A stretch of DNA of 64,000 nt from Setoptus koraiensis (lineage: Eukaryota > Animalia > Arthropoda), in contig CM106585.1 in NCBI GenBank assembly GCA_048013815.1, positions 18,290,001-18,354,000 of the forward strand. Direction: 5' to 3'. Position 1 is the stretch's first letter. Every line of letters begins with the position of its first letter. Below, piece by piece: positions 10,532 to 40,586 of this stretch. The position numbers were made by a program, and so were the translations under genes. Under the pieces are notes generated by a model that was not told the DNA's origin, made no database searches, and was given only the letters and a program-made list of their open reading frames with translations.

Positions 10532-10758
10532 CGAGATTGGGAGATGATTGGCGCCGTTTCATTTGAATTTTCTTCGTGCGCCTGCGTCAAATTAGTGACG
10601 GAAGTCAAAGCACAGTCAAAGGCGTGAATGTTGGAAACTCATGCTCAGATCGAATGAAAAGTAAGCATGTTCTGATGCGAATTGTACTGAAGAATTCTAA
10701 TGGCAATTGACCACATTTATTATTTAGTTTGTATCCGTATCAACATATATCACTATTG
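10532..10758. repeat. Copy B of the ~230-bp direct duplication (between GPN3 and RPL7A)
   Basis: Aligns with 8232-8466, with substitutions and small indels. Confidence 0.9.
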
Positions 10759-10896
10759 TTAGATTATTTCGAGTCTGCCACATCTATTTGTAGACTTGAT
10801 AACGACGCCGACTATTAATAATTTAATTATTAATCTCACATAATAGATATCCTTGTATTTAAATTTTTGTATTGATCCATCACATCGCACATCATC

Positions 10897-12105: not shown

Positions 12106-12124
12106 TTAGCACAACATGAAAAAT

Positions 12125-12136
12125 AATAAATTTAAT
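12125..12136. terminator. Adjacent poly(A) signals AATAAA (+, 12125-12130) and ATTAAA (-, 12131-12136) between RPL7A and the Skp1-like gene
   Basis: AATAAATTTAAT in the 155-bp convergent spacer. Confidence 0.55.
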
Positions 12137-12260
12137 CCAAAAATTAATTGACTCTGCTGTTGCCCTTAGTAAATTTTGGTTATCCCAAGCCGCACCTGCC
12201 GCACTCTTATGAAAACTAATTGTGCTTGTTATCCAAGTCGTCTAAAGACGTACTGATCTA

Positions 12261-12794
12261 TCATTCTAGACCAATTTTGGCGCTCTCCATCTTTAGCTGA
12301 TGCTCCTCATCCTCCGAGAAATCATTCTCTATATTGAATCTCTCTCGGATTTCGCTGACAGAGGCCTTCTCGAGATCTTTGGCAATCAGACTACAACAAG
12401 CATTTAATAGACTTTTGACATCCAAATAACTAGCTGCGTTCAAAAGACGCTCAAGCTGTTGCCCTTTGAAGCCTCGTATAAAATTCTTGTCCCATTGAGA
12501 GAGTTCGTTAAAAGATGGCGTTTCATGTGACATACTTGTGTCATCTTTATGTTTCTTACTCCATTTTATAACTGCATCCAGTGTTTCTCCATCCACATTT
12601 GGCAGAAACAATGGCTCATTGGTAGTCATGGAATCATAGTTTAACTTGAGATTGTCCATCATGTCTTTAATCATGCATAGACAATGAACAATATCCTTCT
12701 CGACTATAAATAATTTTTTATCATTACTCATGAGATACAACTTTCCGTCTGAATCGACCTCCATCGTCTGAGGGACTTCTTCTAGGGAGGTCAT
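12261..12794 (-). CDS. Divergent Skp1-family protein, intronless, 177 aa
   Basis: LPNVDGETLDAVIKWSKKH, LSQWDKNFI, LLNAASYLDVKSLL, EIRERFNIENDF. Too divergent to call the SKP1 orthologue. Confidence 0.9.
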   Translation of the reverse strand: MTSLEEVPQTMEVDSDGKLYLMSNDKKLFIVEKDIVHCLCMIKDMMDNLKLNYDSMTTNEPLFLPNVDGETLDAVIKWSKKHKDDTSMSHETPSFNELSQWDKNFIRGFKGQQLERLLNAASYLDVKSLLNACCSLIAKDLEKASVSEIRERFNIENDFSEDEEHQLKMESAKIGLE

Positions 12795-12899
12795 TGTTTA
12801 GATTGAACCGAACAAGTTCATCTGAGAATCCAAGAATATTTTAACAAAGCAGTCTTCATTTATCTCAATTTAATGTAGTTGATTGCGATCAAAACATTT

Positions 12900-13058
12900 T
12901 ATGAGAGGTAGACTGGGCGTTGCAGTCCTGATCCGCGTGACCTCATCAAAGTAGATGATTTTTTGTCAGTTAGCCAAATGACTTACAGGTTGCAAGTTGC
13001 CGCCGACAATATCAGAAGAACAATACCCACGCAATGCATTCGAGATTTACCTCTCATA
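12900..13058. mobile_element. 159-bp element closed by an 11-bp inverted repeat with TA ends (candidate Tc1/mariner-type MITE relic or structured RNA)
   Basis: TATGAGAGGTA (12900-12910) and TACCTCTCATA (13048-13058) are exact reverse complements. Internal short stems GACTG/CAGTC and TCATC/GATGA. Confidence 0.3.
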
Positions 13059-13800
13059 CAGCGATCTATAATAAAATGGCCACTATACTAGACATTTGAT
13101 TTTAGCGTTATTACGATAATTAAAATGAGGTTTATATATGAAATAAGTTTGTTTGATTTATTTATTCAGGATTAAAAATTGATCACTATGCACACTGATA
13201 ATAATATAAAAAGCTAATCTATTTACTGGTAGTATTCAACAACAAAATATTGACATTATCACAATTGATTAAAGATGGACGATGTAGTCATCATTATTGA
13301 GCGAAATTAGTTGGCTCTCCCTAGGTGGTAGTAGTTCGGGTAGCTTTACGAGAATTCATGTAGCTTCTAAGTAGCTTGAATACCATCATGACGGACACTG
13401 TTGTTTATAGTTGATTGTTGTTATGCGATGGACCAAGGAAAAGATTAATCCCATGATGCAACAGTAATGGACAGCAATTGTGGGAAATAGCAAGTGAGCG
13501 ATATGGAAATAATTGCAATTGATTAGTTGACGTACATGAAGCTCTGGACGACTGTTGTTTATTATAGGCACAAGCAACTTACCTAAAGCGGACAATATTA
13601 TTATGAGTGAGGCTATTCCGCCAATTATGCCAATAATATTTTGATTGTTGCTAGTAACTGCGGCAGAATTAGTGTGCCAACCTAATAGTGATAGGAATTC
13701 GATGAATTAAATTTGTAGTTGATTATATTATCTTATGAATGCATGCATAGGTAAGTGGTTAGGATTATCGACCTTGGACAACAACAATCGGGTCTTCGCA

Positions 13801-13846
13801 GCTTGTTAGGTGGCAGCTTGTTAGGTGGCAGCTTGTTAGGTGGCAG
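13801..13846. repeat. 15-bp tandem repeat x3 (GCTTGTTAGGTGGCA)
   Basis: Three exact copies read directly. Confidence 0.95.
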
Positions 13847-14205
13847 AGCCATGACCGTTTTGTGTCTCTTATTTATCGGTATTTTGATTTCGTGATTGGT
13901 GGTCAGGCAATTAATTGTGATTAATTGTCTATGCGAACATCATGTCACTTTTTGACACTCACACACACAGTTAGTTGGTGGGCATGTTGTGTTATAAGTT
14001 ATTGGAGGCCATCGAAATTGGCCAGTTTCTCACTATTGTACCCAGTGGCACTGAGGAGTACGAACATCTCAGACTGCGAGCCAATCGCGTGTAGCAAGAT
14101 TTGACTACATCGGCTCGACGCGCCTTGTCGGGGGTCTCTTGTTTGGGTTCTTTCAGCGTGAGCTCACTTCCTCAAATCAATTCACTCCTGCTCGATGTAA
14201 ACATT

Positions 14206-14211
14206 TTTATT
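14206..14211 (-). terminator. Candidate poly(A) signal of the beat-like gene
   Basis: TTTATT on + about 400 nt past the candidate stop. Further candidates lie at 13157-13166. Confidence 0.35.
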
Positions 14212-14614
14212 GCGGACCACGTAATTAGCCGATACATGAGAGTTATTTGTGTGTGTGTAAGCGTTTCTGGAATTGGTTTGGATAAACATTTGGATAAACA
14301 AGCGCGAACACTGGACGCGATCTGATAGCGAGCACGGCACCGCTCAATTTGGCATTCATTTGAATAGCTTTGATCTGCATCAAGTTAATTGAGTGGCTTA
14401 TTCATTGATGTTTGTTGCGGAGCCATGCTAAAATCGCGAGCCAACAAAACATTCTTCAGTTTGTCATGTATCATGAGTTATCTCTCAATTGGAATGCCTG
14501 CCGGCCGGTTTGCAGCGACCGGCCAGCGGCGTTGCAGCGACCGGCCAGCGGCATTGCAAATTTATTGTCTCTCTGCGTGCGCCTACACTGCTCCAAATGC
14601 AGAGAGACTAACGG

Positions 14615-14838
14615 TCATCGGTCGGCCAATTGACGCCACCGACAATCTGACATGACCATCAACAGCGACAACCAGATGAGACAAGCAACAGATCGAAAGC
14701 GACAGATAACGGTCAAACAAGCCACGCGGACTAACTGAATTGTGATTTTGTTCAGCCATTTGGTGCCACCCGATACCTCGTAGTCGTAGTCGATATTCGC
14801 ATGTTTGACTGTTTGACTGTCGGACCCGAAACTGGTCA
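14615..14838 (-). CDS. Beat-like Ig protein, candidate exon 6 (hydrophobic C-terminus: TM or GPI signal)
   Basis: CAG acceptor at 14839-14840 is phase-1 compatible with exon 5. Encodes ...EVSGGTKWLNKITIQLVRVACLTVICRFRSVACLIWLSLLMVMS...stop. An alternative acceptor exists at 14870. Confidence 0.5.
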
Positions 14839-16483
14839 CTGGTCAGTGTGAGCGCGCCATGTGTTGGCGCTTTTGGGTATGAGTGCATCGCGTGGCGATG
14901 CAATTGGCCAGGTAATATAGTATTTATGGTACAGGCCATTTAATGGCTGTAACTGTCGCTTCAAGGACGAGCCTTAAATAGCGACACGGGCATCGATTGG
15001 TGTTGCCACTTGTCAGCTCGTTAAACAAGCAGACTGTTTGGCCAATTTATTATCTGAGAACATGGACCAAGACGGCCGGGCCGGCACACTAACAGACACT
15101 AACAGACACTAATAGAGACGTTGCGGATTGCAACCTGTTTGCCGCTCCAGCGGGCCACTTGGCAAAACTCGGCCAATTCGAAACGAACAAACCGCCGAAA
15201 AACGGCATAAATAAGTCGCCGGCTCGCAATCGATTTGGCCACTTGCTAACGATTGACAGCGGCAACATTAGCGCCAGTTAAATCACTCAAATGTATGCGA
15301 TATTAAATCATGCGACTGCGGGACTGGGCTACCCCCGGGCCCGGTCAGTGTCAACAAAGAAATGGCCCACTGGCCCGATGAGCGATGCGTGCCGTCGATT
15401 CTCACGCACTTGACCACTGCCGGCCGGAGCGGCCAGAGGGCGGCTAGAGGGCATCGCACGAGCGCCGGCGATTGCGAAGTTGCGCAAACGAGAAAATGCG
15501 AATGCGTTGTGAAAACGCGAAAATGAGAAAATGCGAAAATGCACTCGCGGTCCGCCGACACCGACGCACGGACTGGACAGTGCCGAGTCGACACAATGAA
15601 GCAAAGCAGCGAGGAGGCAAAAATGCAAATACGCAAATAGACAGAAATTCAGCATGCTGTTGCAAATGGTGCGGCACACGGGCACGGGCGGTGCCATATT
15701 CAGCAGGGCACCGTGTCCGAAAGTGTCTATCGGCCGGTCGACACGATAGACTCTCGGACAGGTAACAGCGGCCGATGATGACCAATCGAGGGCCTGTTGA
15801 CCAATGGATCGCGGCGTGGAGTGTTTATTTTGAGCGGCTGCCAATGGCCGCCATGGGCCGCCGATTGCAGCCGCTCGGCAATGAGCCATTGAGTAAACAT
15901 GGCGGAATCAACGGGCAGCGCCATTCGATGGTGTTGCTAATTTGCTTCGACAGTCATAACGCACCGTCGCGTTAAATCACGCGGCTCCGCGGGACACTCC
16001 GACAGCAACATTTTCACTCAAACAGCCGCTTGTTGCTAGTAACAATGCGTGGTGTTGCGGGCAATTCGCGCTGTGACGCAACACGCCCGGCGATAGTGGC
16101 AACGTGCCACTCGAGTGGCCACTTGCCTCTGGCCAATTTCTGGCCGACGGTTGACTGGTTTGCTGGGGCCAAGTGTCGGCCAAAAGCAGCCAGAAATTCG
16201 GCACCACCCATCGTCGGCAACGAGTGATCGATGGAGCGTTGTTTTGACCAGCAGGCGGCGCTGTCGGAACTGACCGCTCCTCGAGAGCCAGCGACAGGCC
16301 GGCAGTGAGCACACAATGACGAGGCGCAACAAGTGCACGACTCGCGAATTCCTGCCGGCTCCTCGAGTGACCAGCTCGAAGGTGTCGGCCGCAGTTCGGA
16401 CAGTTGGGCCGCTTGGCGCATCGTTTCGCGCTTGCTGCTCGGGCATTTGCATAACTGCTTACAGACTTGCCACGACATGTGCC

Positions 16484-18165: not shown

Positions 18166-18215
18166 GCACCATGTAGCACCATGTAGCACCATGTAGCACC
18201 ATGCAGCACCATGTA
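18166..18215. repeat. 10-bp tandem repeat x5
   Basis: GCACCATGTA units, one variant. Confidence 0.95.
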
Positions 18216-18286: not shown

Positions 18287-18895
18287 CTCGTTGCAGGGCC
18301 AGGCTCTGTTGGCGCTTGTAGTGGGTGCCGGGAATTGTGAGCGAACACATGAAATTGGTGGCTATCTGACTGTTGAGGGTTTTGTCGTCGACAAAGGCGT
18401 GCGTTGTGACGTCCTGTTGGTCGCCCGGGGATAATGACGATGGGCTGTACACAGTGTTTGTGCGCGATTCTGGCATCAGTTCGGGAATCATGGCCGAACT
18501 GGATATCCAATTGGCGTGGTACAAATGATGCTGCCTGGTTGGTTGCTCGCCAGCCAGCTCGTTGACTTGACCGGTGACAGGCGAGTGGCCGCTCCTCAAC
18601 CGGAAGCCGCTGCTTCCGGTTGCGCGTGTCAACTTGCCGTAATTGGCCACCGTTGAGCTGCTGTCACCGACACCGACTGACAGCTCGTGCTCGCTGTTGG
18701 CGAGCTTGTTGTTGCTGTTTTGTTGGCGCTTGCTGTTGTAGGCGCCGCGATGCAGATGCACGTCGGGCTCGATGAACGACGACTTGTAACGGAACAACTG
18801 CAACTGGGGCCGGGGAAACAAACCAGAGGCCTTGCACGTCATGTTGTAGCCGCCCTTCACTTTGCTCACTTCGAAGCTGAACCGTTTCGCGGGCA
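18287..18895 (-). CDS. Beat-like Ig protein, exon 5 (second, C2-type Ig domain with a large insertion)
   Basis: YNMTCKASGLFPRPQLQLF...FMCSLTIPGTHYKRQ; acceptor GCAG at 18896, donor G|GTACGT at 18286; 609 nt, phase 1-1. Confidence 0.85.
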
Positions 18896-19730
18896 CTGCG
18901 CCGCGCATAACACAGCATATATCATGCACCATGCACCGTGCACCGTGCACCACGCACAATAACATTCACGTTTCGGGGCAAGTCCATTCAAGGGCATCGA
19001 CGCCGGCACCAGTATCCATGAATATTCACCGGTATTCGGGGGTGTTCACACATGGACATGGGTATTCGCGCGTAGTCATGGGTATTGACACGTCGACATG
19101 GGTATTCATGGCCAGTATTTAAATGTTCACCGGATGGTTCCAATTGCAGTCCACGGAATAGTTGAAATTCATATTATTGTCACATTATTCAGATCGATTA
19201 TCGCGTCATTTTTTGTGATCGTAGAGCATCGCGGGTTGCATTGGAGGACAGTGAGAGATTATAGAGAGATTATAGAGTCAGTCAGTGGGTTGTCAGCATG
19301 GCTAGATATGAATAGTGGATGCGTGGTAGTCGCGGAGGCCCCAAGCAGAGGCTCCCGCGCAAATTGGCACAATTTCTCGGCTCGCTGGCCGTCGTGTGCC
19401 TCGGTGCGGCACATGCGCAACAGGCTGTGCCAGACGGATATAGTGGATAAAATGGACAAAATGGTAAAGTGGATGAAATGGACAAGGTGGTAAAGTGGAT
19501 ATAGTGGCTCGACGTAGTGAATATGACGGGCCGTTAGGCGCTGTGAGCACTCAGGCGCAACCACTCGATCCGCTCGAGTCGAGCGTGATATATGGCTGGC
19601 AGCGAGATTGACAGACCGTTAGACGTTGGGTTGCATTGTCTTGTCTAGTTGTTGTGACAGTGGCGCCAGCGCCAATTACAAATCGCAATTTATTGATTTG
19701 ATACTCGCTCGGCGCACATCGCTCGAGTTC

Positions 19731-19807
19731 ACGCAACCGGACGCAACAAGACGCAGCAAAACGCAACAAGACGCAACTGGACGCAACTGGACGCAACTGG
19801 ACGCAAC
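19731..19807. repeat. 10-bp degenerate tandem repeat, about x8
   Basis: ACGCAACTGG/ACGCAACAAG units. Confidence 0.9.
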
Positions 19808-21190
19808 ACTGCGCCGACTGCAAGTTCCCCATTGGCCCTGTTCACCCATTCACCTGTCGCCTATTTAGCTTGGTAACGCTAAGCTGCGATTTTACGCTGT
19901 CAGCTGACAGCGATGAGCTGACCTGTCACCTGTTGATTGAGCAATGAGCGTGAGCAATTATTGTGTTGATTGCATGGCCAAGAAACGGTTACGCTTGTGT
20001 TGTCTTGCGCTCGGCGTTATCCGTTGATTTGTTGATCGTGTTGGCGATCGCCCGATGACAGGTATTTGCAACATAACGCCGGTGTGATCGCCGGCGCCAA
20101 ATGATGATGCGCTGCCATTTGTGGTTGCGGCGGCCGCATATCGTCGGGCCGCATGTAACAACAACTCTATTACTTCACACTTGTTTATTGTTATTGTATC
20201 TGGGATGTGTTATTCATTTGTGTGTGAAATGAATAACAATTTTCAGCATATATCACTGATGTTAGTGCTGAACACACACAGTTGCTTGTAGCTCGGATAG
20301 AGGGCCAACATAATGAACATAATGAATATGGCAGCACACAGACGGCGATAATCACGATTACGCAATAGCCATCATGATCTGGTCGTGATATATGGCTGCT
20401 GCTGCTGCCGGCGCCGCCGCCGTTGTGAATTGTGAGATTGTAGTGAAGAGGCGCACCAATTATTGCCAGGCGCAATCATATGGTCAGTGTTGGTATGATT
20501 TTCGTGGGCTAGTTGGGTTGTTGTTGCGTTTCGCAGTGGCCGGTTGTTGTTGCGTTTCGCAGTGGCCGGTGCCGCTGAATTAATCGCTCACTGACCTCTG
20601 CCACAAGTGGCCACAAGCGACCGAAAGCGGCCACAAGCGGCCACTGGATCGCCGTGATTCACTGGCCGCAAGCATCCCGTCAGGCCGTGCCAGCGCAGGT
20701 GAGCGCACAGGTGATGTAGCTATGTGGCATGCTGCAGTCGCCACCTTTTGTGTTTTGCACACTAACACCAGTTGCACACACACACACAATACGCAGATCC
20801 ATTATTCATATTGCGCAATATCCGGTGCTGGCCGCATCACACAACAACAATAGACCGAAACAAGCGGCGGCGGCGGCATTGAAAATTGGCGATGCACCAC
20901 AACAGCATTATTTAATCACCCGCCCAACACAGACAGCCTAAAGAGAGACCTTTAACAGGGGGCAGCGGCACTTTCTCGCCATAGGCCATTATTGGGCACG
21001 ACAGGTGAGACCAGTTCGCGGAGTTGGCGTGAACGGCCAACGAGAGCAGCAACAGCAACGCAATGGCCACTCAACGGCAACAACAAGCGAGCTAACAAGT
21101 GAGCTCGTTAACTCTTACGCAACTTGGCTCGCGTCGTCGCTCGCACTGTTACCTGTCGCCGCCTGCTTACGTGTGTGTGCTTGAGCGAGC

Positions 21191-21230
21191 TCAGGTGAGC
21201 TCAGGTGGGCACAGGTGAGCACAGGTGAGC
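21191..21230. repeat. 10-bp tandem repeat x4, each unit carrying a CAGGTG E-box
   Basis: TCAGGTGAGC TCAGGTGGGC ACAGGTGAGC ACAGGTGAGC. Confidence 0.9.
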
Positions 21231-21953
21231 AAACAAGCAGCCAGTCAAGTTCAGGATGGTCGTGCCGGCGGTGCCGTGATTGCGCCGGCCAACAGCCAAA
21301 TCGAGGCGCAATCTCAAGCGAGCGTCTCAACGAGTCTCAATTGTGTGTCTCACCGTGAGCACAATTGGATTACTATTATGCAATAAATGACCATCCGATA
21401 TGTAAGTGCAAAAATATCGCCGGCATGCGCCTAATGAGCTGGCCGGCCAACGATCGGCCGCCGGCACATCAGCCGAACAGCACAACACACATTGGCCGGC
21501 ACCCGGACAAGCGGCCCGACAGGCGGCCGACGAGCCGGCGAGCCCGACGAGCCGGCTGCACAGGTGAGTGGAACACTTGCCAGGCGGCGCTCATTGGCCG
21601 CTGGCTTTGCCATTTGGAGCAACGGTGTGCGCCGGCGAGTCGTGCACAGGTAAATGGCAAAAGTGGCGCACTGTGTACTAGCGCTAGTATGCGAATGGCA
21701 AGAAATTCTTGCCAAGAATCATGAATAGCGCTCACACGGGCTATTCACGGGCAAATGTCATGTTGTGGTTGGTCGCATGTAACGCGCCATTATTATTCAT
21801 TATCTAATCGAATCAATCCAGTCCGACGCGCACACAATGAACGCGCATTCGAATCGCTGCGTTCCGTGGTCGCTGTCCGCTGGCGCTGCCCCACAAAAGA
21901 AGCGTGAGTCGTGTGCGTGTTGGCGATCGCACACAGCCGTTGGAGCCTCGAAC

Positions 21954-22040
21954 GCTTCTCTGCGAGCCTCGAAGCTTCTCTGCGAACTTCGGAGCTTCTC
22001 TGCGAACTTCGGAGCTTCTCTTCGAACTTCGACGCCTCTC
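21954..22040. repeat. 20-bp tandem repeat, about x4
   Basis: GCTTCTCTGCGAACTTCGGA-type units. Confidence 0.9.
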
Positions 22041-23459
22041 TTCGGAGTTAGAAGGAAGCGAGCTGCACTAAGCGGGCGTGCGTGCGCTGTTCATTCACCG
22101 AATGCGATTCACTGGATGCGATTCACTGAATGCGATTCGCTGATGCCGGAGCGCTCGACACACGAGCCGGCCGGCATCACGCAACCGTCGGGCCGGACGC
22201 ACGTCGCGTTGCGTGCCCACTCGTGCCACCAGGCCGGCCCACCACCGTCACTATGACGCAAACAATGGCGCATGAAAATTCGGTGCTATTCGCAGTCGCA
22301 CAAGTGGGAGTGGACGCTCGCCAATCTCGCCCACCGGATTGCCCGACCGAGAGCCCGCATTCGAAACGGATCAAATGCGTTCGAAACGGAATTCGAACTC
22401 ATTTGGAGAACTCATTGGAGGAAAGAAATTTGATTAAGCTCGGCGCTGCGAACGCTTGCTGCTAGAGCGCGAAAAAAACTCTGTTGCAGTTTGTTGAATG
22501 AGGCACGCAAAATGCAAGCGCAATCAACAGCAGCTCATAATGGATCAACACTGGGCACTTTGGCCAGCGATGCCTCAGCGCGTCTCAATCAATTATGACT
22601 CACAACCAGTGTTGATACGCACTGGATAAATGCCAAGTTGTGCGTTGAAAAATCCAGATTCACTCTCAATGAATCTGCACAGTGAGCTCTGTTGTTTTGG
22701 TTTGTGTGCGAACCGGACCTCAATTGACCGCATACTGACTGGCACCTGTTACCTGTGCTACATGTGATTATGACGTGCACCAATCATCACCAACTCATCG
22801 CTAACATAAGCGTTAGTTAGCGTTGTAAGTGGACTGTTAATTATAGGCCGTCGACTGGCAGGGCAATAGTAGCTCGCAACAAGTTGCGTAACGCGCCGTT
22901 GATTGACTGTCGTGGCAACTGTGTGTGTAATACCATCTAATACCATTTAAATCAAGCCGCCGATATCCGGCCACGTGACCACATCGAAGCCGATGGAAAC
23001 TCAACTTGGGTTCAGCAATTCAATCGTTGTCGCTTCGCTGCAACTCTCGTTGACTAACCGAATCGTTGTGTTTATCAGCTAATAATATTAGCATTATTAG
23101 TAATGTTGTGGCCGGGCGCTGGTCACCTTTCAGTTATCTACGACGATACTTACTAGAAGAAATATTCATATTCTAACGCCTCAAAATATTGTAACATGGA
23201 ATTTCACTGTCAATATCACTGTAGTAACAATAATAATAATAGTAACAGCAATCACTATTATTATCACTATTTCTATTATCAATATAGTGGCCAAGCAACA
23301 AGTCGTGACCCATCAACCTGTGCACTCACCTGTTCACGACCTATTGCGAGAGCCTGTTGCGCAAAGCGTGCAAGTGATGACCAGCACGACCATGGTCACA
23401 CTTATGGCACCGTTCGCCAGTTGCACACAAACAGCGCACAAATTGGCCGCAAATTCCAT

Positions 23460-23460
23460 C

Positions 23461-23498
<38 letters not shown>
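23460..23498. repeat. (CAA)13 microsatellite
   Basis: Uninterrupted run. Confidence 0.95.
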
Positions 23499-23499
<1 letters not shown>

Positions 23500-24826
23500 A
23501 CAGCCGCCGGGTAACAACAACACCGTCAGGTTGTGTTGCGTCATTATGGTCATTAGCCAGTGGTCAGCTGTTAATCAGTGATTCCATAGAGCACTCGGAG
23601 TGAGTTTTTACCTTGTTGTTGTTTGTCTGCGCGCTGTCAGCTGTTGGCTGTCACATGTCAGCTGACAGGTGACAGCAACATCAGCTGACAGCACGCGCAC
23701 AGCTTGACACATCAGGCTTGTGAGGGCCTCCATTGGGCCACAATAGATGACGCAACAGCGAGCTGCGGCGGCCAGTGGGCATCATTGCACCTGTTGCCTG
23801 ATTTCTAAATGACCAGTGATCCAATCAATTCATTCGCAAAGTCAGCAAATCAATGCCGGCCACCGCAACAACAGATGGCGGCACCGGTCCGACAGCCATT
23901 CCGTGGCCAATCCTCGGAATCGCGCGGATTCCGTGGATAGGCGCAATGTGATAATTTGTGCACAGTTGTATCATTTGTGTGCAGCAGGAGCAGCCCTTGG
24001 CGTATGTTGTGCGAGCGAGAAAAAGCGAGAGGCCCGAGGCAATCGGGCCGCCATCATTATGATTGGTTTTGACAGGGCCGAAAGCTGAAAAACAATTTCC
24101 ACAGGTTGCCCGTTTCGCGGCAGCATTCGGCCGGGCGGCTTCGCCCGCTCGAAGTGGCTCGTTATTAATGATTGTCGCTGATCGTTGGCGATCAGCGTCG
24201 GTTCATTCACAATTTCGCAGAGAATATAGAGAGAGAGCCTCCATCGTTAATTGATTGCGCGCCGTGCCCGAATGTCCGGCCCGCGACATCCGTTGGCCGT
24301 GTCCGCCGTGTTTGTGGCGCTGTTTTGCGGCTCAGAGCCGCGCCGAAGCGGGCCATTGCGCAACAAATCGCCAGGGTAGATTATTTGTAGCAGGCAGGCA
24401 GGCCCACACTGCGAAAATATACTAAAAATAAACTAAAAATAAACGCATCACACTGCATACGCCATTTATGCATGATATCATCTATTTGTGCAAACAGTGA
24501 TAATTGCCCGAACGCATCGCCAATTGAGATGCGCCGCCGCCGCCGCTTGACATTGGACGAGCGGCGCTCATTGGCGAGCGATTCGCGGGAGTTACACCCG
24601 ATCGGGCGCACCCGCGATCGGCGCAGCCGATCGGGTAAGCTGGCGGGCGCCAGTTTAATCTCGATCGAGCCGCTTGAGCCGCTCGATCAATGAGCTGGCC
24701 GGGCCGCATCATTAGCGGCCGGCAGTTGGCCGGCAGTTGGCCGAGCCAGCGCAACGGCGCCGGCCAATTAGCCGGCGCTAACTATTTGGCATCGACTGCT
24801 CGCATCGGCACCACTGACGTGATGCT

Positions 24827-24923
24827 ATTGCGCAATTGCATAATACAGATTGCATAACACACATTGCGTAAAACACACATTGCGTACATATTAATAAATA
24901 TTGCGTAATACCTATTGCGCAAT
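24827..24923. promoter_or_regulatory. Homotypic cluster of C/EBP / PAR-bZIP-type sites in intron 4
   Basis: ATTGCGCAAT (24827, 24914), ATTGCATAA (24835, 24849), ATTGCGTAA (24863, 24900) and one imperfect copy (24879). Confidence 0.55.
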
Positions 24924-25188
24924 ACATGTGCGATAATATTTGGCCGGTCAATCACACTGGCTCACGCTGGCCAAATAATCTAGCAAGTGTCAGTGAATGG
25001 CGAGTGGCGTCGACATTGGCACAAATTTGCTCGCTCGATAACCTATCATTGATAATCTATCAATGACAAGTGGTCAGCGTGCAACAATGTTGCCAATGGC
25101 TCATCGGCATGTTATGTAATAATTATTGCATAACAACATTATTGCATCATGCAAGATTGTTAGATTGTTAGTTATGATGGGCACTTAC

Positions 25189-25682
25189 CGTATACTGTCA
25201 ATTGGGCCGACTTTGTGTCGTAGCTCTCCAGCGACGACACGCTACAGGTGAATTTTCCGCTCATTGCGCTGGTGGGTCTAATCAGTTTGAGGCCCCTGTA
25301 GCGGGTGCTCGAGTCTCTGGCCAAATTGTTCATCATAAACAAATAGTTGTCGTAATCGAGCTGCTGCTGGCCTGGCTGCGTCAAATTGTCCAATTGTGTC
25401 GCTGTTGTGGTTGTGGCGCTCAATTTGTTGTTGCCCTGCTGACCGCCAGAGTAACCGCCGTCAGTGCCGGAGTTACTGTCAGCGCCAGACTGACCGTCGT
25501 ACCCGTCGGCCAGGTACGCGAGCGAGGGCGCCGCCGCGGCCTCGTTGGCCGCCTTCACCATGTGCTCGTCTTGGCTGACGTCGTAGCTCTTGTCGAGCCA
25601 CGATTCGTATTTGTCCGAGTAGGTGCGGCTGTTTAGTTCGGGTATGTACTGGTAGATGGGCACCACGTCGTCCTCGTAGAAC
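25189..25682 (-). CDS. Beat-like Ig protein, exon 4 (body of the first, V-type Ig domain)
   Basis: FYEDDVVPIYQYIPELNSR...RYRGLKLIRPTSAMSGKFTCSVSSLESYDTKSAQLTVY resembles chelicerate beat-like Ig proteins; acceptor AACAG at 25683, donor G|GTAAGT at 25188; phase 2-1. Confidence 0.88.
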
Positions 25683-28028
25683 CTGTTGTCGATCAATGCA
25701 ACAATCGATGTAATGGTAAGTGTGACAATCGATGTGATAATAAGTGTGACAATCGATGTAGTAATCAGTGTAACAAGCGACATGATAATGGGTACAATAA
25801 TCAGTTTAATAATCACTATAATAATCAGTATAACAAGGGATAATATAATAATCAATACAATGGCCGATTGGTGCAATAATGAGCGGAGGCAGCGTTAATT
25901 GATTTGATTAATGACGGACCGATAATTGGCTCTGGTAGCGTGACCTGTCAGATATGTCCGCGCTCATGGTCGCCCATTGCGGACAATTGGCCGGCGACAA
26001 CGTATCGGCTGCAACTATTCTGTCTTGTTGGATATTATAAAATTTATATTATAAAATCCAGCAATGGCCAAGATAAAACCACTTTTATCAAAAAAGTGGG
26101 CGAGAAACACGAAAATATTCACCAATCTCACAAATATTCAGCCTGAATAATTCAGGGCCGTTCGAGCGATTGGCCGCCGCTCGCTATCACTTGTTAAACG
26201 ATCGCACGGAACGATGGCCGGGCCCCTGCTCACGTTTGACAGTTTGTGTGTCGTCAGACACAGCACCTCAGAGAGATCGAGCTTGCCGCGCCCGGCACAG
26301 TGGCGACCACGGGCCGGCGTGACGCGCGGCGCGGCCCTCCGACCGCGACCCGTCAGACTGTGGCGGTCAAACGGGCAGCTCCAAAGGGGCAGGCTCACAC
26401 GGTCGTACTCACACGGTCGTACTGTGACGGTCACAGTGTGACGGTCAGCGGGAATTGCGCGACGGTCGGGAAGAGCGAAAGCGGCCAGTGGAGGCCAACT
26501 GGCCGCTGGCCGAACGAGGACGAGCGAAGAGGAAAAATGATCGATGGGCAAGGGCGAGCGGAGGACGACGATCAATTAAGTTTGCGCTTTTTGTGTGTGA
26601 GTGTGCCAGTCGGGCAACCGGCCTTCTCTGGCGAGTCCATTGCGAGTCGTTGGCTTCTTAGATTCTTTCGCGATTCTCTTGCGATTCTTTCGCGATTCTT
26701 TTGCGATTCTTCGGCCAGCCAGCCAGCCGGTACGACACAATGCCCGGCCGCCAATTGTTCTTCGCTCGTTTGGCCGTGGCTCGTCGCTGTTGGCTCGTCG
26801 CTGTTGGCTGGTCGCTGTTGGCTGGTCGCCGTTGGCTCGTCCGCCTGGCTCACAAGCAGTCAGTGGATGCAATTTGCAAATTTCCATTTAAATTTCTCGC
26901 CCTCTCTCGGCTGGCGAGACAAGTGCGACAGGTGAGAGCGAGCAACAAGTGAGAGGCAGCATGCGAACGGTGGCTCGCTGGTCGCCACAACGATGTTGCG
27001 CTCGTCGCAGTTGTGGCGACCATTGCGCAACAGTACGCAACAGGTGAGTGAATGCGTAACAGTGTTGCGGTAACAGTGTTTCGGTAACAGTTTTGTGCAA
27101 ACAACCGCGAGTGGGAAGTGGCCCGTTTGTGGCGTTTGTTGCAACGAAAATAACAGCGCACCGTTGGAGATAAGCGCGGCCAATTGGCCAATCAACTGGA
27201 CGATCGCCAACCATCGATCATATATCAATTAACTTGCCATGGTGTTACGCTTTCGCAGTCATGCCATTCAAGCACCGACACGCCACTCACCCAAGCTTGT
27301 TACGTAACGAGCAACAGGTAACAACAGGTAAATAGCGACAGCCAACGGGTAACAGGCTGCAGAGGGGCAAATATGAATGGGGGGCAAATATGGGGGGCAA
27401 AATTGTCTCATACCGGCGCATCGGGCGCATAGCAAATAATTGAACGCACACATTGTCGCCGCATTCCGACCGCAACTTGTGTGGCTCTCGCTCACCTGTC
27501 CAATGGTCCAATGGTCCAATGGTGCAACTGTTCAATTGGGCACAATTTTGCGATGCGTAGCCGGTTGCGTCATCGGTGCTCGGTTTCACTGGTGTTGTTG
27601 TTGCTCGCAACAGTTTTGACAGATCGGCCATGGTGCTCGCAAGCTGCTCAAGTTACTCGAAATGAGCCACTTGTCGAGCCGAGTGTGCCCGGCCGAGCGT
27701 GACAAACCACAAGCGAAACCGTAACGTAACGTCTCTCGCTCTGCGCTCACCTGTCGAACCGACAATGTCGAGGCTTTGTGTGTGTGCTGTCACAAGAGGG
27801 CTCCTCGCTGCCTCTTGCTGCGTCTCGGCGCGGCCAAGCGGCCAATCGTTGGCATGATTCATTGAGCTGAACGGCGAAAACGGCGAAAAATCGGCGACAA
27901 TCGCCGAAAATCGTTCGCTCCGTTGACTTCGGCCGCTGGACTCAAGCGAGCGCTTCCTCGCCCTCCGAAGCGAGTTTGCACAGATAATGGCCGCTCTCAC
28001 CGCTGACCAAAACACACAACGGGCCAAC

Positions 28029-31158: not shown

Positions 31159-31210
31159 CATTTAATTGTGAGCCCCCTATCGAAGGCCTTGTCATACTTG
31201 AGCAAACAGT
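31159..31210 (-). CDS. Beat-like Ig protein, exon 3 (52-nt micro-exon with the B-strand Cys and C-strand Trp; absent from the ORF track)
   Basis: CCAG|ACTGTTTG...ATTAAATG|GTAAGT encodes (D)CLLKYDKAFDRGLTIK(W). Phase 1-2 bridges exon 2 (...NVTM) and exon 4 (FYED...) exactly. Confidence 0.88.
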
Positions 31211-33389
31211 CTGGCACACATTGCGAGCGGACAGAGTTTGTTGGTTGGTTCGTTTGTTGATTGTTTGTTGTTTGTGCGGTTCCATTTCAGCGTCGGGCCG
31301 TCGGGCCGCCGGGCCGGGACATACGGGGGCGAGAGAGAGAGGGAGAGTAACGTTAAGAGCGAGAGTAACGTTAAGGGGGAGAGAAAAAAACGAGCCACCG
31401 ATTAGAATTGTTAGTGGGTAAGTGTGTTAAGGGAGCAATTGTTTTTGCGGTTGCACTCTCGCTGTGTGTCCGTTGTCATGGTTACTCGATACTGGCACTG
31501 GTCACATTTGAATCACTGCAATCATTCAAATGATGAGACACCGCTGCGCAGCTAGCGCCACTGGCGCCGGCAGTGGCCGAGCTCCGAATTAGATCGTTGG
31601 CAGGCTGCGAACGCTTTATTTTACCTGAAATTGAAATGGTCCCGCTGAAGATTTCAACTTTCAAGTCAAGTTCGCGGCGGCGCTGCGATGGGGCGCTGCA
31701 AACTCGGCTCACCAAACTTCAAAAACTCGGCTCTACAAACTGCCAAAACTCGGCTCACCAAACTGCCAAAACTCGACCGGCCAACACTAACAAATTGTAA
31801 GCTAACAAACGTAAATCGCAGCTTGTCCCGTGAGCTCGGCCGCGTTTCCATGGCGATTCAAGGTGGCGGCGCAACGCATCACGTAATTGCGTAATCGCGC
31901 ATTCACACAATCAGCTGATCATGTCATGGAATCGGACGTCTGGCGGACTCGACTGAAACTGCGTCCGAGCTCATTCATCAATGAGTGGCACTGGCCAACT
32001 TTTGTACTGGCCAGCTTTTGCGCAGCCCAAAATGCCCAGCTAATCGATCTCGATGTGGCAACGTGATGTGTCGATTGCGCAACTGTCAACGGCGCCATTT
32101 GTTTGTTTTGTCATCGGAAACGATCGAGCGACAGCGACAAATCGGAGCCCTACTAACAAGTTGCTAACAAGTTACTAACAAGTTACCAACAAATTGTTGG
32201 CATCGCGAGCCAACATGATGAATGAACATATACGAAGCCACCAATAAAGCCCGCTCGCCACAGCTGAAAAGTGCACTAGGGTCGCTGACCTCACCTGTCG
32301 GGCCGCTCGACGATCGCAAGCCGGGCCGCTCGACGATCACAAGGCGGGCCGGTGAGCCGGGCTCGTTGAGCGGCCAACAATGTTACGTGAACACTGTTGT
32401 CATCATTGGCATCATTGGTACACGTTGGCCCGTTGACTGGCAAGAGCTTGCGATGTCACCTTGCGAACGGCGCTCTTCGGCAGCCATTGCATAATACGAC
32501 GCTCGCTTGCATAACGCTTACGTAACACACGGTTGCGTTATTGCGCAATTGTGTCGCATTGCGCAATAGTTGGCCATGTCATGTTGGTACAAAGTGTGCA
32601 CTGTTTTGTTGCGACAGCGCAACATGACAGGTGCATCTGAATAATTTGCATTCGGGCCTTATATTTGTGTTCGCATTTGCATTTGTATGGCCAGTGGTTA
32701 TTTTGGGTATTGTGTGACACTCGCTGCCTGCACTCGCCAAACAATCTGCCATTTAATCTGCTATTTAATCTCGTATTTTTCTCGCCATTTTTCTCGCTGT
32801 TTCTCGCCATTTCTCGCCATTCTTGTCGCTATTCTTGTCGCCGTTTTTCTCGGCGCATTGCCCATTGAGCGGCTCAATTTGAGACGCTCTCTCGTTGGCG
32901 CCATCGCGCAACCAGCACACCTAATGGCATGAGATCTGGCTGCCGCCGATTATGTAATGAGAGCAGCTCGGCGAAACTTTTGCGCCGTCGCTTCTTTGTT
33001 CGGCCACTCGGCGGCGCACCCAACGAGCGCTCGGCGCAACCGCCTAGCTCAAGTCAACTCGAAATAGCTCAATTCAAGCCGATTGAGACTTGACGTACCG
33101 GTCACTCTGACTGTCAGAGTCTGACAGCAACTTGAACTGTCAGCTCGATGGCGAATGTCACATCGTCGGGCTCGGCCAAACACACAATGTGGCTCGCCCG
33201 CGCACATCGGCCGGCACGCTGACAGCCCCAAACAGCCAATCAATTATCCCCGACGGCGAAAACTGTGCCTGTGTTGGCACAGCCTCTGCACCAAATGCGC
33301 ACAGTGCCGGGTAAATATCATATAAGTATCAGGCAATCAGACACACAGCTTGCGAGTCATGATGAATGGTTGGGCGAAACAATACTCAC

Positions 33390-34616
33390 CCATGGTCACG
33401 TTGGCTGTGCCGTTTTCCACCGAGTGCGGCGCAATCAATTTAATTATGTGCACCCCAATCTGCGCGGCTTGTGGCTGGTTCAATTCGGGGGCCGGCGCCG
33501 TCGTCAGGTACGGCTGCATGTCCGGCTCGTCGGCCGACTCGTCGTGGTCAGCGGCCAGCGCCTCCGCTCTGGCCGCCAGGGCCGGAGCGGGCGCAAAGTC
33601 CGACGCGGGCGCAGACTCCGAGCGCTGCCAGGAGGAATCGCCAAGACCATTAGTGGCGGCGAGCTTGTTGTTGTCGTCGTCGTTTGCGTTGGCGCGCTGC
33701 TGCTCACGCTGATGATGTCGGCGGCGCTCATTTGCATGATTATGAACGGTCACCTGTTGCGGCGGCTGCCCCGTTGCCGCGGCCACCGCTCGCCGCTGAT
33801 GAGCCTCGGCCACGGCGAGCGGCTTGTTTATGTTTGTGCCGTCGTCGTTGTTGTTGTTGTTGTCGTTGCTGTTGCTGTTGTTGTTGTTGTTGTTGTTGTT
33901 GCTGTTGTTGTCGTTGTTGTTGTTGCTGTTGTTGTTGTGGCTGCTGTTGATGTCGCTGTTGTCTTGTCCATTGTGCGTCCCAGTTGCGTCATCAAGAATG
34001 CCCCTGCCAGCAGAGTTAGCGGTGCCCTTATTTGCGGTCATCATTAATTGTGTTTGCCGAGCTCGGTGGTGCTGCTGTTGTTGTTGTAGCTGCTGTTGTT
34101 GTTGTTGTTGTTGCTGTCGTTGCTGTTGTTGCGTCTCGACCGCATGCTGTTGTCGTTGTTGTTGTTTTTGTCGCGGCGCCACATCATGGTCGCTCGCAAC
34201 AACAGCGCCAGCGACCGACTCATCAACATCATCATCATGGTCGGCAACATTGTCACCAGGTGACGACCTTGCCAGGCGGCCGGGCGCCGCTGGTGGCTCG
34301 CCGGCCGACCGGGCGAGCCGAGCGCCATTAGCCGAGGCGCCCTCTTGACGGTTGTTGTAATTAATCATCAAAGTCGAGACATTGTTGTCGGTGCCGGCCA
34401 GTTGCGGCCGCTGTCCGCTAGTCTGTCGCTGTCCGCTGGTCCGGCGCTTTCCGCTGGTCCATCGCTGGCCACCAAACGGCCGCAATGACACAACTTGTTG
34501 CGCTTGCTCTAGGTGGCGCTTGCTCCTGATTTTAATGGTTGTATCGCTCAGTTCGGGTTGATTGGGTGCGGGCCAATTGTTGCTGGCTTCAATTTCGTCC
34601 ACTGCTGCCGCTGCTG
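33390..34616 (-). CDS. Beat-like Ig protein, exon 2 (Q/N/A-rich low-complexity region plus start of Ig1)
   Basis: 1227-nt open frame ending IGVHIIKLIAPHSVENGTANVTM with donor G|GTGAGT at 33389. The first AG after a long AG-free zone (AAG|CAG|CAG at 34617) is phase-1 compatible with exon 1. Confidence 0.8.
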
Positions 34617-34832
34617 CTTTAATTGTCCGCCAGTGGCGCGATTGTCGCGAATGTGGCGATTGTCGCGATTGTCGCGAATGTGGCGATTGTCGCGATTGTC
34701 GCGATAGTTTGACAAATGTTGGCGAGACAATTGTCGGGCAATTGTGTGTAAACGGTGTGCAGAGGGTTGTTGAGAAACAGCGACGAGATAGCGAGGAAAC
34801 AGAGAAGAAACAGCGGAGAAAGTCGCCAATTG

Positions 34833-34839
34833 GTTAGTC
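34833..34839 (-). promoter_or_regulatory. Candidate distant branch point GACTAAC followed by a pyrimidine tract (intron 1)
   Basis: Consensus branch point 217 nt upstream of the acceptor, within a 242-nt AG-free zone. Confidence 0.55.
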
Positions 34840-37800
34840 GTTGAGTCGGTTGTCGAGAGTCTGGGCAGGCCCTGAAATGGCCAATGTTGTAATGTCGTAA
34901 TGTTATAATGTCACTATGAATTGTGTGTATTGCGAGTCAATCAACAATGTGCGGGCAATTGCGTCATTTTGTCGTTTGTTTGTTTGGTCGCCAGGCGAGC
35001 TGCTGAGCGGCCTGAGCGAGCCAACGAGAGCCGACTTAATTAATAAACAGGAAACCCGATGCTACAATTACCTGGCGGCCGGTATCAGAACTTGTGATTG
35101 AGCGGTCGACGAGTGAATTGTCCAGTCTGATTGCATGTGACACAAAATCTGATATGCGGCCTGTGGAATGAGATGCCCATGTCAGGAGCTCGAATGGTGA
35201 GCTTATAGGAGCGATAATGAGAGCGGGTAATCCGATAACGGCGACGCCGACAGCGTCAGAAACGAGCTAATCCGGCCGACACATCGCGCCAACTAATATG
35301 ATGGTTTGGACAGGAGAAACACACACACTCACAGCTTTACAGGTAACGGCGCCAAAAAGGGCGCCAACAGGTAGGTCAGCGACCCGCTTGTCGAGCGGTG
35401 CCCGTGCGCACGGCGGACGGGCCGATGGGTGCGCCCCAGCCTCAGGTGACTCTAGTGGCCAGAGTCTAGTGGCCGGTCTTGCGTTCGTCAGCGGCCGGTG
35501 ACGCGAATGACAAACAAGTGACAAACGAGCGACAACAATCAAACAATGGGATCATCTTGTGCGCTGTCACTGAGTTTGTCATTGGACACTGGCAACAAAC
35601 AAACGAACGCAAACGCTCGAAAATGAAAAAACATTCAGACAAATACAAACATTCTGGCAACTGTCGGAATCGGACGCCAAAACGACGTCTGAATCATTCA
35701 GACTGAATGACGTTTGCCAGCAAACAAACAAACAAACAATTTCGCGAACAATGTAGAAACGCTAAACTGTCCGACGGCTAATTAGCCGATCGCGACACAA
35801 CTTGCGTCACACCGACAAGCGACCCTTGAACAGGTTAACCGTCGCTCAGCCAATCTAATTAGCATAAGATTGCGTCTCGGCCGTCCGACTTGCCAGCATA
35901 ATCTTGCCAGCGGAGCGCGGCTAATGGCCCGCTCGGACGGGGCCGGGCCGGCCCGCCGCTCGCACTGGGCCGTTGGTTGTCGGCCGAGCGGCCGACAACC
36001 AACGACAAACGACTCGCCAGCGGCGAGTCGTTTGTTTGCGCCAGAGTGCCGCCGATGCCCGAACGCCGCCGCCTGGGAATTTTTAGTTGGGCCGGACGTT
36101 TTATGTGTGCGATCGAAACGGCAAATAAATCGGCGCCGGCCAATCCCGGCCGAGGCGACAGCTGAGTAATTAGAGCAACACGACGGCGAGCTGTGAGAAG
36201 CCGCCAGTTGTCGCGCCGGTCGCCAGCGGGCCGCCTCGGGATCACATCGGCGCGATGTCAGCGCCGCGATATCGGCGCGTCACACTGGCGAATCGCTATT
36301 CGTTCGCGGTCCTTCGGACTGTCGCCGTCGCTGCTCTGGCCCACTTTTCGCAGCGTCTCGCTGCCAGCGAGTCACTGGCTTCTGACCGTCAGAATGTGAC
36401 GGCGCGTCGACGAGCATCCACGAATCGCAATCATATTTACGTAATCATGGTTGCTGTTTTGTTTCATTGCGTGTGCCTGTTGCGTCGATCGGGCCGCCGC
36501 CGCCGCTCGATCGGGCCGCCAAACAGCTCAATGGAGCACCAAAAGTGAAACTGCCCGTGTGAAGCCACTCGCTCAATCTGGCCAGTCGGCCGGTCGGACT
36601 GTGGGCCATTCACAGGCCCGATGGCGATGTGCCGTTGCGAGCGACTGTCAACGCAACCAGCTGTCAATGGAGCCAGCTGTCACAGAGCTGTCAATAAAGC
36701 GGTCAGCTGTTGGCGCCGTCACCAACTGCTGACAATTGGCGACTGTCAGCGCATAAATATAAATAAAAATAACTGTCAATGAGAGTGTCACGTTGACAGT
36801 TTTGTGTCGGGCCGCAATTTGCGGACAACAACAACGCAGATTACAGTGCCCAGTCAGCGGCGGCGATGAGACCAGCAATGGCGGCGACTGACTGAATTGT
36901 GACTGAGTTGTGATAGGCGCCAACACATCACAGGCCTCACACAATCTCAGCACAACAGGTGAGAGCGCCCTGCTTCTTGGCAAGCCACTTCCGGCGGCTG
37001 CCTGTGCAGGCCGCGAATAGAGCTTGCGCAGGCGACAACCCGACGAGTGCCCTAGTTCTCGCCAACGGCCAAACGACCCGATGATTGGCGATGCGGCCGG
37101 TCGGCTGCTGCACACTGAACGAGCTTGCAATTCGATAATAATGGCGGGTCTCGACTCGAGACTCTCGAGACTCGCGAGCGATGCCGCGACGGCCGGACAG
37201 CGTCAGCGGGGGCGCCAGTCACTGACGTCACTGGGCTCATCAGCCGATGCAGCGGCGACAGTGCGCGTCTCGCCCACTGGACAATGTCGCCCAAAACAAC
37301 AACAACGCCAGCCCCAAAACAGCAACAACGCCGGCCAACAAACACAAATTGTGTTTGGCGTGCCGACCGCTCGCATCAGCGCTCGTCTGTGTGAGCCGCT
37401 GACCACTGGCCAATGACAACTGACAACTGACAACTGACCACTGGCCACTGGCCACTGACCACCGAACGCTGGCCACTGACAACTGACACTCGCTTCAGGT
37501 GAGCTCACCTGTGCTCACCTGTCGGCCTGTGTGAATCGAGCTGAATCAGCTGTGCGCGCTCGCGAGTTGTGAGAGAGTGACGCAAGTAGAGCAATTGATG
37601 AATGAATGATGTCACAAGCCTGTTGCGCAACAGCAAACTGGACGAACCGAACGGACCGAGCAAACCGAACAAGCGGCCAAACTGGACAAATTGGCGCCGT
37701 GATGAGCGGCTAATCTAATGAGCTGATCGCTGGCTTTCGTGAGGCAGCTCGTCGTGAGCATTGTTGCGCAACTTGCGCCGCCAACCAATGGCCGGCCACA

Positions 37801-39185: not shown

Positions 39186-40586
39186 TGTCGTGCCGGTTCG
39201 GGCCGCTCGGGCGACACAACCGACGGCCAGCCGAGTCAGCGAACCGAGCCGAGCCAAGCCGAAATTCGACTGCACATAACGCCACTCTCGTCCAACAAGC
39301 GACACGGCAGACTTTTCAATGGTTCGCAATGGTGCTGGCGACAACAACCAGTCGCGTTGTTGTCGTTGTTGCTGTTGTCGTTGTTGCTGTTGTCGTTGTT
39401 ACCGGTGTTGTGGTTGTTGTCGTTCAAACGGCGACGACATTTCCAGCCATTTTAAGCCATTTTAAAATGGCACAAACTGGCAATGTTTTGACAGCGAAAC
39501 GTGCATCCAGATTCCAGAAGACTCACTTTTATCGCCAGCGTTGCCTCGTTTGCGTTGCTCGTCCAGTGGCCGCTCTCGGCCGCCCGTCCGGCCGCTGGCG
39601 CCCGACGCTGAGGCCCAAAATGCCCACGAAGCAGCACAATGCCCGTGTCAAACGGGGCCTCTCCGTCTGAGCGCCCGGCGCTTGAGCCCATCACGCAACG
39701 AGCGCAACACTGGCCGACAATATCCAATATCCGTCCGAATTGCGACCTGTTTGCCAAATTGTCTATTTGCCGATTTGTCTATTTGTCTATTTGCGATTTC
39801 TTGAATCATTTTGTGTCACTTTGCCCATTGCACAGTTGCATAAATATAGTTGTGAGCCGCACACCCGACCGCGGGCCGCACCGCAATCGGGTATGCGGGC
39901 CCGAAATGTGGGTATCGAATGGTGGCCACGCCGAAACGCGGGTAAGTGGGCTAACACGGCCCGTGTTACACGGCTAGCAAGTGGAGAATAATAGTGGCAA
40001 TGGTTACTCACCTGTGGAGGCTGACTTGCTTTTGCCCGAATGCTGGCTCTGCGATCGGTCGAGGGCGAGCTCGGCAGACCCGTGCAGGGCCTCGTAGTGG
40101 GGCGACGAATCTTGCTGCTTCTTCGGCTGGCTTGCTGCTGCCGCCGCCGCCGCTGGCGATAATTGAAGGAACTTTAATGGATATATTATTTTTTCGTCCC
40201 TATTTTGGACACGTGAATGCGCGGCTGTGGCGCTAACAACGATGATAACAACTATTTCGAGAACAACAATGGCGAATAATAACGAAGATGTGGATAATAT
40301 CGATGATTGCGGCCTCTTGCTGCTGCTGATTGGCGGGCTGCGGGCCTCATTGGGGCCATCGTTTCGGGCCGAGGTGGCGCTGGCGGCCAGCGCCAGGCTC
40401 TTCTTTTTCTTCATGATGCTCGAGAAGAACACTTTTCGCACTTTTTCTTCGCTCGCTGCTTCGCTTCTTGGCTGCTCGACTGTTCCAGTTGCTTATTTTT
40501 TGCTGATTGTCGCTAGTTTTCTAGTGATTAATAATGACATTAGCACTTATAATGATTGCTAGGCTCAATTCCAACTGATCACTGTT
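39186..40586 (-). repeat. Left arm of a head-to-head inverted duplication (5' region, exon 1 and start of intron 1)
   Basis: Its reverse complement aligns with 41135-43063, from AACAGTGATCAGTTGGAATTGAGC to CCGGCACGACA. Confidence 0.93.
40012..40414 (-). CDS. Beat-like Ig protein, exon 1 (basic n-region plus hydrophobic signal sequence)
   Basis: ATG 40414, MKKKKSLALAAS...LLFAIVVLEIVVIIVVSATAA...KSASTG|; donor CAG|GTGAGT at 40011, phase 1. The spliced CDS totals 3009 nt (1002 aa) if candidate exon 6 is correct. Confidence 0.8.

Follow-up and report, generated by a model that had tools for sequence, protein, structure and literature searches.

The stretch of DNA analysed here (the window, 64,000 nt; C1:18,290,001-18,354,000) belongs to the 48.8-Mb, two-contig assembly of the mite Setoptus koraiensis. 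Positions 1-16000 have a GC content of about 40%, compact and mostly intronless housekeeping genes, and 3-4% tandem repeats; at a sharp shift the sequence passes into a second part (positions 16001-64000) with a GC content of 50-60%, long introns, and 12-22% short tandem repeats built from units of 7-27 nt. On the minus strand of this second part lies a gene that was rebuilt as five exons and is predicted to encode a two-domain Ig-like membrane protein. The exons, together with intron 4 and the acceptor of exon 5, are as follows (a slash marks the splice junction):

40414..40012, minus strand: exon 1 (proposed), with an ATG, a hydrophobic anchor and the phase-1 donor ACAG/GTGAGT
33390..34616, minus strand: exon 2, 1227 nt, coding for a Q/N-rich stretch of low complexity, followed by the first strands of the predicted Ig domain 1; donor ATGG/GTGAGT
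31159..31210, minus strand: exon 3, 52 nt, containing CLLKYDKAFDRGLTIKW; donor GTAAGT; 72% identity to F. setiger
25189..25682, minus strand: exon 4, 494 nt, with 2 nt carried in at entry; donor G/GTAAGT
25188..18896, minus strand: intron 4, 6293 nt, ending in a 404-nt AG-free zone
18896..18897, minus strand: acceptor AG of exon 5, phase 1, frame-consistent and homologue-matched
18287..18895, minus strand: exon 5, 609 nt, coding for a predicted Ig-like domain with a disordered insert of ~95 residues; donor GAG/GTACGT

Each exon of the model was checked separately, by reference and with phase arithmetic. In-frame stops are absent from every exon, and the phases match at all four junctions, across introns 1 to 4 of 5395, 2179, 5476 and 6293 nt. 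The lengths of exon 2 and exon 5 are multiples of 3, and those of exon 3 (52 nt) and exon 4 (494 nt) are not; skipping of exon 3 would therefore shift the reading frame. In a HMMER search the best homologue of exon 5 was KAG9510377.1 from Fragariocoptes setiger, an eriophyoid. When this protein, itself an automatic prediction, was used as a tblastn query, the boundaries of exons 3, 4, and 5 fell exactly on the AGs of our model, with the junctions ..TIKW/FYEDD.. and ..VY/VPAKRF.., the latter at the exon 5 acceptor. In more distant homologues, too, the domain begins with EPAK(S)F (e.g. EPAKSF), and PAK(R/S)F..F is kept at the domain start in 8 of 9 aligned homologues. For the exon 2 acceptor, phase is the sole support. 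Exon 2 opens with tandem AGs of the CAGCAG type, the acceptor being followed by CAGCAGCGGCAGCAG (34602-34618, minus strand); because several of these AGs are in frame, NAGNAG-type variants differing by single alanines are possible.

The preliminary description had drawn exon 1 elsewhere, with a donor near 35071. That exon was rejected, as no open frame starts from its ATG, and it is probably wrong; the better first exon is 40414..40012, which is open from its ATG, encodes the anchor, and joins the unchanged exon 2 acceptor in phase. The first coding exon occurs as a near-identical inverted duplication (40004-40441 on the minus strand and 41658-42104 on the plus strand), the arms of which carry MKKKKSLALAAS.., the hydrophobic anchor, and a GTGAGT donor. 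The minus-strand arm is the one that joins the gene in phase, and no splice partner of the plus-strand copy was found in the window.

The AlphaFold model of exon 5 consists of six confident beta strands flanking the disordered insert, with the first strand at residue 4 and a pLDDT of 86-96 at both ends. The top Foldseek matches of this model all belong to the Ig superfamily and are weak (E 0.1 or worse), and the sequence matches in the PDB, to butyrophilins, are likewise weak (E about 0.09). Pfam gave no match for exons 1, 4, and 5 or for the F. setiger homologue, and nothing meaningful for exon 2. A search of the mite's own genome with the exon 5 protein returned the self-match only, so that there are no paralogous acceptors to compare. 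The only metagenome relative is a single locus, on a contig that ends before the acceptor.

The 3' end of intron 4 is free of AG for 404 nt, and neither strand of the window has a longer AG-free run. The runners-up on the minus strand measure 243, 242, 193, 181, and 165 nt; the plus strand reaches 195 nt at most. The 3' ends of the four introns carry the following features:

18898..19301, minus strand: AG-exclusion zone at the 3' end of intron 4, 404 nt, bounded by AG 19303-19302 and AG 18897-18896
19277..19297, minus strand: candidate branch sites CTGAC, CACTGAC and GACTGAC, with putative branch A at 19293, 19282 and 19278
19238..19276, minus strand: pyrimidine tract following the intron 4 candidate branch sites, CUCU-rich, 70-72% pyrimidine
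25685..25815, minus strand: AG-free zone before exon 4 (intron 3), 131 nt, with no clear CTRAC or pyrimidine tract
31213..31455, minus strand: AG-exclusion zone before exon 3 (intron 2), 243 nt, with ACTAAC, whose candidate branch A (31411) is 200 nt away from the acceptor
34619..34860, minus strand: AG-exclusion zone before exon 2 (intron 1), 242 nt, with ACTAAC, whose candidate branch A (34834) is 217 nt away from the acceptor

The composition of the 404-nt zone is balanced (A108 C104 G88 T104). GA occurs 28 times and all other non-AG dinucleotides at least 12 times each, and AG is found 0 times against 23.5 expected from mononucleotide composition. None of 20,000 mononucleotide shuffles of the zone was AG-free, and the run ranks first, after correction for composition, among the runs in the window that lack any one of the 16 dinucleotides. 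The candidate branch adenines lie 397, 386, and 382 nt from the acceptor, in motifs that start 5-20 nt into the zone, and the tract behind them is at the 99th percentile among this strand's 40-nt windows. Pyrimidines make up 47% of the last 40 nt of the intron (44th percentile), with no more than 2 in a row; no yUnAy followed by a pyrimidine tract was found in the last 60 nt, in which the longest pyrimidine run is likewise 2 nt. The preliminary description had reported the 404-nt minus-strand zone, a CACTGAC with its branch A at 19282 and 386 nt from the acceptor G, a pyrimidine-rich tract at the far end with none in the last 40 nt, zones of 242, 243, and 131 nt in introns 1, 2, and 3, and plus-strand AG-free runs of about 190 nt. 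The analysis reproduced each of these values, the plus-strand figure being 195 nt exactly, and two more CTGAC motifs were found beside the first.

RNA structure that would shorten the 386-nt distance was considered and rejected, since the zone folds no better than its shuffles (z = -0.76); with no stable structure over 386 nt, the second step of splicing would need an unusually long reach. Two TGCATG elements (RBFOX-type) are present at 18935 and 18928, 32-39 nt before the exon 5 acceptor, inside a fourfold GGTGCAYG tandem repeat (18928-18940, minus strand), and a related repeat containing GCATGG follows the exon 5 donor (18166-18215).

Introns 1 and 2 are laid out as intron 4 is. In intron 1 a tract with 85% pyrimidine (34821-34782) comes after the ACTAAC, and the rest of the zone is a 9-nt/27-nt tandem repeat; in intron 2 the ACTAAC is followed by a tract of 80-85% pyrimidine at about 31400-31325. 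ACTAAC has only 13 copies on this strand of the window, yet the 242-nt and the 243-nt zone each have a copy no more than 50 nt from their start. The tracts behind the motifs are at or above the 99th percentile in introns 1, 2, and 4, and the last 40 nt before the acceptors are 47-57% pyrimidine (44th-84th percentile) with longest runs of 2-4 nt. Intron 3 is the exception: a distal branch motif and tract were sought in its zone, which is 86% tandem repeat, and none was clear. A single AG separates this 131-nt zone from a further 112 AG-free nt upstream. A distal motif joined to a tract is thus present in introns 1, 2, and 4 and missing from intron 3.

Within the span of the gene AG occurs 1,054 times, and the median gap is 10 nt. 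Among these gaps, ranks 1, 2, and 3 end at the acceptors of exons 5, 3, and 2, and rank 7 ends at the acceptor of exon 4. Four independently placed AGs would all land among the seven longest gaps with a probability of about 7e-10; for the three longest gaps to end at three independently defined acceptors the value is about 2e-8. Tandem repeats make up 37%, 46%, 49%, and 86% of the zones versus 18-23% of the introns, about twice as much, and this share of 37-86% reduces the effective sample size behind the zone statistics. For the 242- and 243-nt runs about 9 AGs are expected, and other dinucleotides show runs that are equally extreme once composition is corrected for; the two lengths are therefore unexceptional by themselves, and the weight of these zones comes from their context. 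When 528 kb of strand were scanned blind for CTRAC followed by a tract and at least 90 further AG-free nt, exactly three sites emerged, those of introns 1, 2, and 4, and the CTRAC, tract, and AG-free signature did not recur in a 200-kb random block. An annotation-free count was made in the window plus the 200-kb block (264 kb) with complexity-filtered runs of at least 200 nt. It gave 9 AG-free, 2 GA-free, 2 AC-free, and 12 CG-free runs, a weak AG-specific signal, and CTRAC lay within 50 nt of the start of a long run in 17% of cases vs a base rate of 9%. The block also holds a 421-nt AG-free run (C1:2,090,758-2,091,178, plus strand) that is antisense to a 1570-codon low-complexity open frame and does not sit at an intron end; long AG-free runs thus also have causes unrelated to splicing.

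Short introns were located through Pfam domains that they split. Seven were found in three genes: one in a GPN-loop GTPase gene in the window, and four in a GH18 gene and two in an RPTP gene in the block C1:2.0-2.2 Mb. These introns (about 100-340 nt) look conventional, with AG-free zones of 42-104 nt and with a branch-like motif (ACTAAT, ACTAAA, CTTAAC, or TTAAT) 20-50 nt upstream, behind which comes a pyrimidine tract. That the layout tracks intron length is thus supported in silico, by zones of 131-404 nt in 4 of 4 long introns as against 42-104 nt in 7 of 7 short ones. One of the RPTP introns (C1:2,046,100-2,046,240, plus strand) contains a perfect ACTAAC with three AGs 36-45 nt further on, all of which are bypassed; the bypass keeps the phosphatase domain in frame, and the acceptor lies ~100 nt from the ACTAAC, behind TTAAT and a pyrimidine tract. 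An ACTAAC with three unused AGs indicates that a strong hexamer alone does not define a branch site.

The genome was searched for the factors that act at the 3' splice site. U2AF2 is present (424 bits vs a cut-off of 310), as are SF1 (SF1-HH, 144 bits), U2AF1 (E = 1e-66 to S. pombe U2AF23, with two CCCH zinc fingers 138 aa apart), and the genes for both Slu7 and Prp18. PTB/hnRNP-L-like matches were obtained at two loci. The second of these (C1:2710144-2711941, minus strand) matches in two pieces with one TAA inside, and may contain an intron or be a decaying copy. SF3B1 gave two inverted matches ~32 kb apart, C2:9084760-9085185 (plus strand) and C2:9117232-9117657 (minus strand), with identical scores of 111.1 bits and open frames of 1067 aa; the pair stems either from a recent inverted duplication of this gene, whose product is a core branch-site factor, or from an artefact of assembly. 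The suggestion in the preliminary description that U2AF or SF1 use is altered in this genome is unsupported, genes for U2AF2, U2AF1, SF1, SF3B1, Slu7, Prp18, and PTB-like proteins having all been found, and with a complete factor set the pattern is not accounted for by the mere loss of a factor that acts at the 3' splice site.

We consider it probable, judging from the sequence, that the 404-nt stretch is a real AG-exclusion zone maintained by selection, with a distal branch site and use of the first AG. AG-free intron ends that open with a motif and a tract suggest that recognition of the intron probably takes place far upstream and that the cut is then made at the first AG. In introns 4, 1, and 2 the 3' end would be set by a yeast-like branch site (ACTGAC or ACTAAC) and the adjacent pyrimidine tract; this signal, 200-400 nt ahead of the exon, would presumably be recognised by SF1, U2AF2, and U2 snRNP. 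The first AG downstream would become the 3' splice site after the first catalytic step. An intervening AG would be used and would break the frame, and such AGs would be purged. The spacer itself would be devoid of splice signals and would be expanded by local tandem duplication of AG-free units, which arise readily in this repeat-rich DNA. The repeat content of the zones suggests that they grew by AG-free duplications: a slippage duplication between the tract and the AG would be tolerated when its unit has no AG, and the spacer would ratchet outward. We infer branch-site use, scanning, constitutive splicing, and growth by duplication from these patterns. The exons of the gene look constitutive; exons 3 and 4 encode frame-critical parts of the predicted Ig-like protein, and the layout accordingly seems to be the ordinary end of a long intron and not a regulatory switch. 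Against this reading stand intron 3, whose zone is 86% tandem repeat and has no good branch motif or tract, the absence of the signature from the 200-kb random block, the bypassed AGs behind an ACTAAC in the RPTP intron, and the modest excess of AG-free runs of at least 200 nt over GA- or AC-free ones (9 vs 2).

The distant-branch-point layout is rare in animals, and in vertebrates it is both rare and tied to regulated exons. A vertebrate distant-branch-point exon with an AG-exclusion zone is alpha-tropomyosin exon 3 (Gooding et al. 2006, PMC1431707). In the same study, PTB exon 11 has a 381-nt zone with the branch at -351, nPTB has a 438-nt zone with the branch at -389, and HTR4 exons 3-5 have zones of 149, 291, and 221 nt; about 1.2% of human introns have zones of at least 100 nt (PMC1431707). 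The mite introns resemble these cases in that the zone lies directly upstream of the exon with a candidate branch motif and tract at its 5' end, AG density is normal upstream of the zone, and there are no signals near the acceptor. The candidate distances of 200-397 nt are in the vertebrate range, and HTR4 also has several such exons in one gene. A short second exclusion zone upstream is a hallmark of distant-branch-point exons (Gooding et al. 2006, PMC1431707), and the second zones in the mite gene measure 48, 0, and 9 nt in introns 4, 2, and 1, and 112 nt in intron 3. Unlike the vertebrate cases, the mite layout is found in 4 of 4 long introns, two of them flanking frame-critical exons, its spacers are largely tandem repeats, and the host is an intron-poor arthropod.

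A second comparison is with yeast, where, according to Meyer et al. (2011, PMC3239191), introns with a long distance from the branch to the 3' splice site depend on RNA folding, which shortens the effective distance. As in these yeast introns, the candidate site in the mite is strong and of the ACTAAC type, and the 3' splice site would be chosen downstream of it and not through an adjacent tract and AG. In contrast to them, the mite zone has no more tendency to fold than its shuffles do, and the distances are several times as long. The mite genome is intron-poor, and its candidate branch sites are near the strict yeast consensus (ACTAAC, ACTAAT) in long and short introns alike. A published study reports convergence on a constrained branch-to-AG distance; in the long introns of the mite, by contrast, the distance appears to be very long and variable.

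Several other explanations were weighed. The strongest of them accepts the distal branch points, and so overlaps with the main reading and differs from it in purpose only: the zones would mark regulated exons that are repressed through PTB- or RBFOX-type factors, in place of a constitutive default. The experimentally verified distant-branch-point exons are all alternative and PTB-regulated (Gooding et al. 2006, PMC1431707), the intron 4 tract is CUCU-rich, PTB-like genes are present, and exons 2 and 5 are multiples of 3. Exons 3 and 4, however, have lengths not divisible by 3 and code for core strands of the predicted Ig domain 1, so that skipping either would destroy the protein, and the layout is common to all four long introns; on this evidence we regard regulation as an unlikely purpose. 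We consider it similarly unlikely that the true branch point of intron 4 is proximal and non-consensus, with the AG-free stretch being kept for another reason, e.g. as repeats that bind a protein regulating exon 5, and with the distal CTGAC being incidental. The UGCAUG pair 32-39 nt upstream of the exon, the AAUACCCAUG repeats and several other repeated motifs inside the zone, the lack of a distal signal in the zone of intron 3, and the existence of PTB-like genes would all fit such an arrangement. It is opposed by the last 60 nt, which offer no yUnAy with a tract and no pyrimidine run longer than 2 nt, and by the opening of three independent zones with a branch motif and a tract; moreover, binding sites would leave unexplained why AG is absent from 404 nt of mixed sequence in which GA occurs 28 times.

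A misplaced exon 5 acceptor, the true one being an in-frame AG a few codons downstream (e.g. ..cgaag/TGAGC..), is very improbable. Two further phase-1 AGs do lie 27 and 36 nt inside exon 5 and the F. setiger model is automatic, but PAK(R/S)F..F is kept in 8 of 9 homologues and the first beta strand is predicted with high confidence at residue 4, and a downstream acceptor would in any case lengthen the distal distance and leave the zone in place. Chance or composition, i.e. tandem duplication of AG-less units with no link to splicing, is the least credible explanation: repeats do make up 37-86% of the zones, runs free of other dinucleotides can be similarly extreme, and the 421-nt run in the random block is unrelated to splicing, but ~17 AGs are still expected after the repeated third of the 404-nt zone is discounted, the coincidence of the three longest gaps with three acceptors has a P of about 2e-8, and the placement of ACTAAC and tract would go unexplained.

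Returning to the main reading, the conclusion that this gene provides a new instance of a known intron architecture, probably a constitutive one and in an animal where it is possibly systematic, is well supported. Four consecutive long introns share the AG-free layout, and two of them adjoin exons that cannot be skipped without destroying the protein. The evidence comes from a single gene (4 of 4 long introns) and from the contrast with short introns, and the literature that could be searched contained no publication on eriophyoid splicing signals. A wider proposal is that eriophyoids end essentially all of their long introns through branch sites hundreds of bases upstream and the first AG, constitutively and with the full canonical factor set, the spacer being free to grow by AG-free tandem duplication; we offer it tentatively, with the balance tipping slightly against it. 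If it is true, a whole class of introns would for the first time in an animal lineage be spliced from distant branch points as a rule, and these mites would be a natural system for testing the reach of the second catalytic step. If the layout is confirmed by RNA and found genome-wide, predictors trained on proximal pyrimidine tracts would misplace acceptors in these mites, and one new AG within hundreds of bases would amount to a splice mutation. The limit on the distance to the 3' splice site would also be open to study in an animal that has U2AF, SF1, Slu7, and Prp18.

More AG-free gaps occur on the minus strand within introns 3 and 4, at 27003-27195 (193 nt), 23403-23567 (165 nt), and 29019-29150 (132 nt). 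These could precede unannotated small or alternative exons, or could be due to chance; the 165-nt gap opens with CTRAY motifs.
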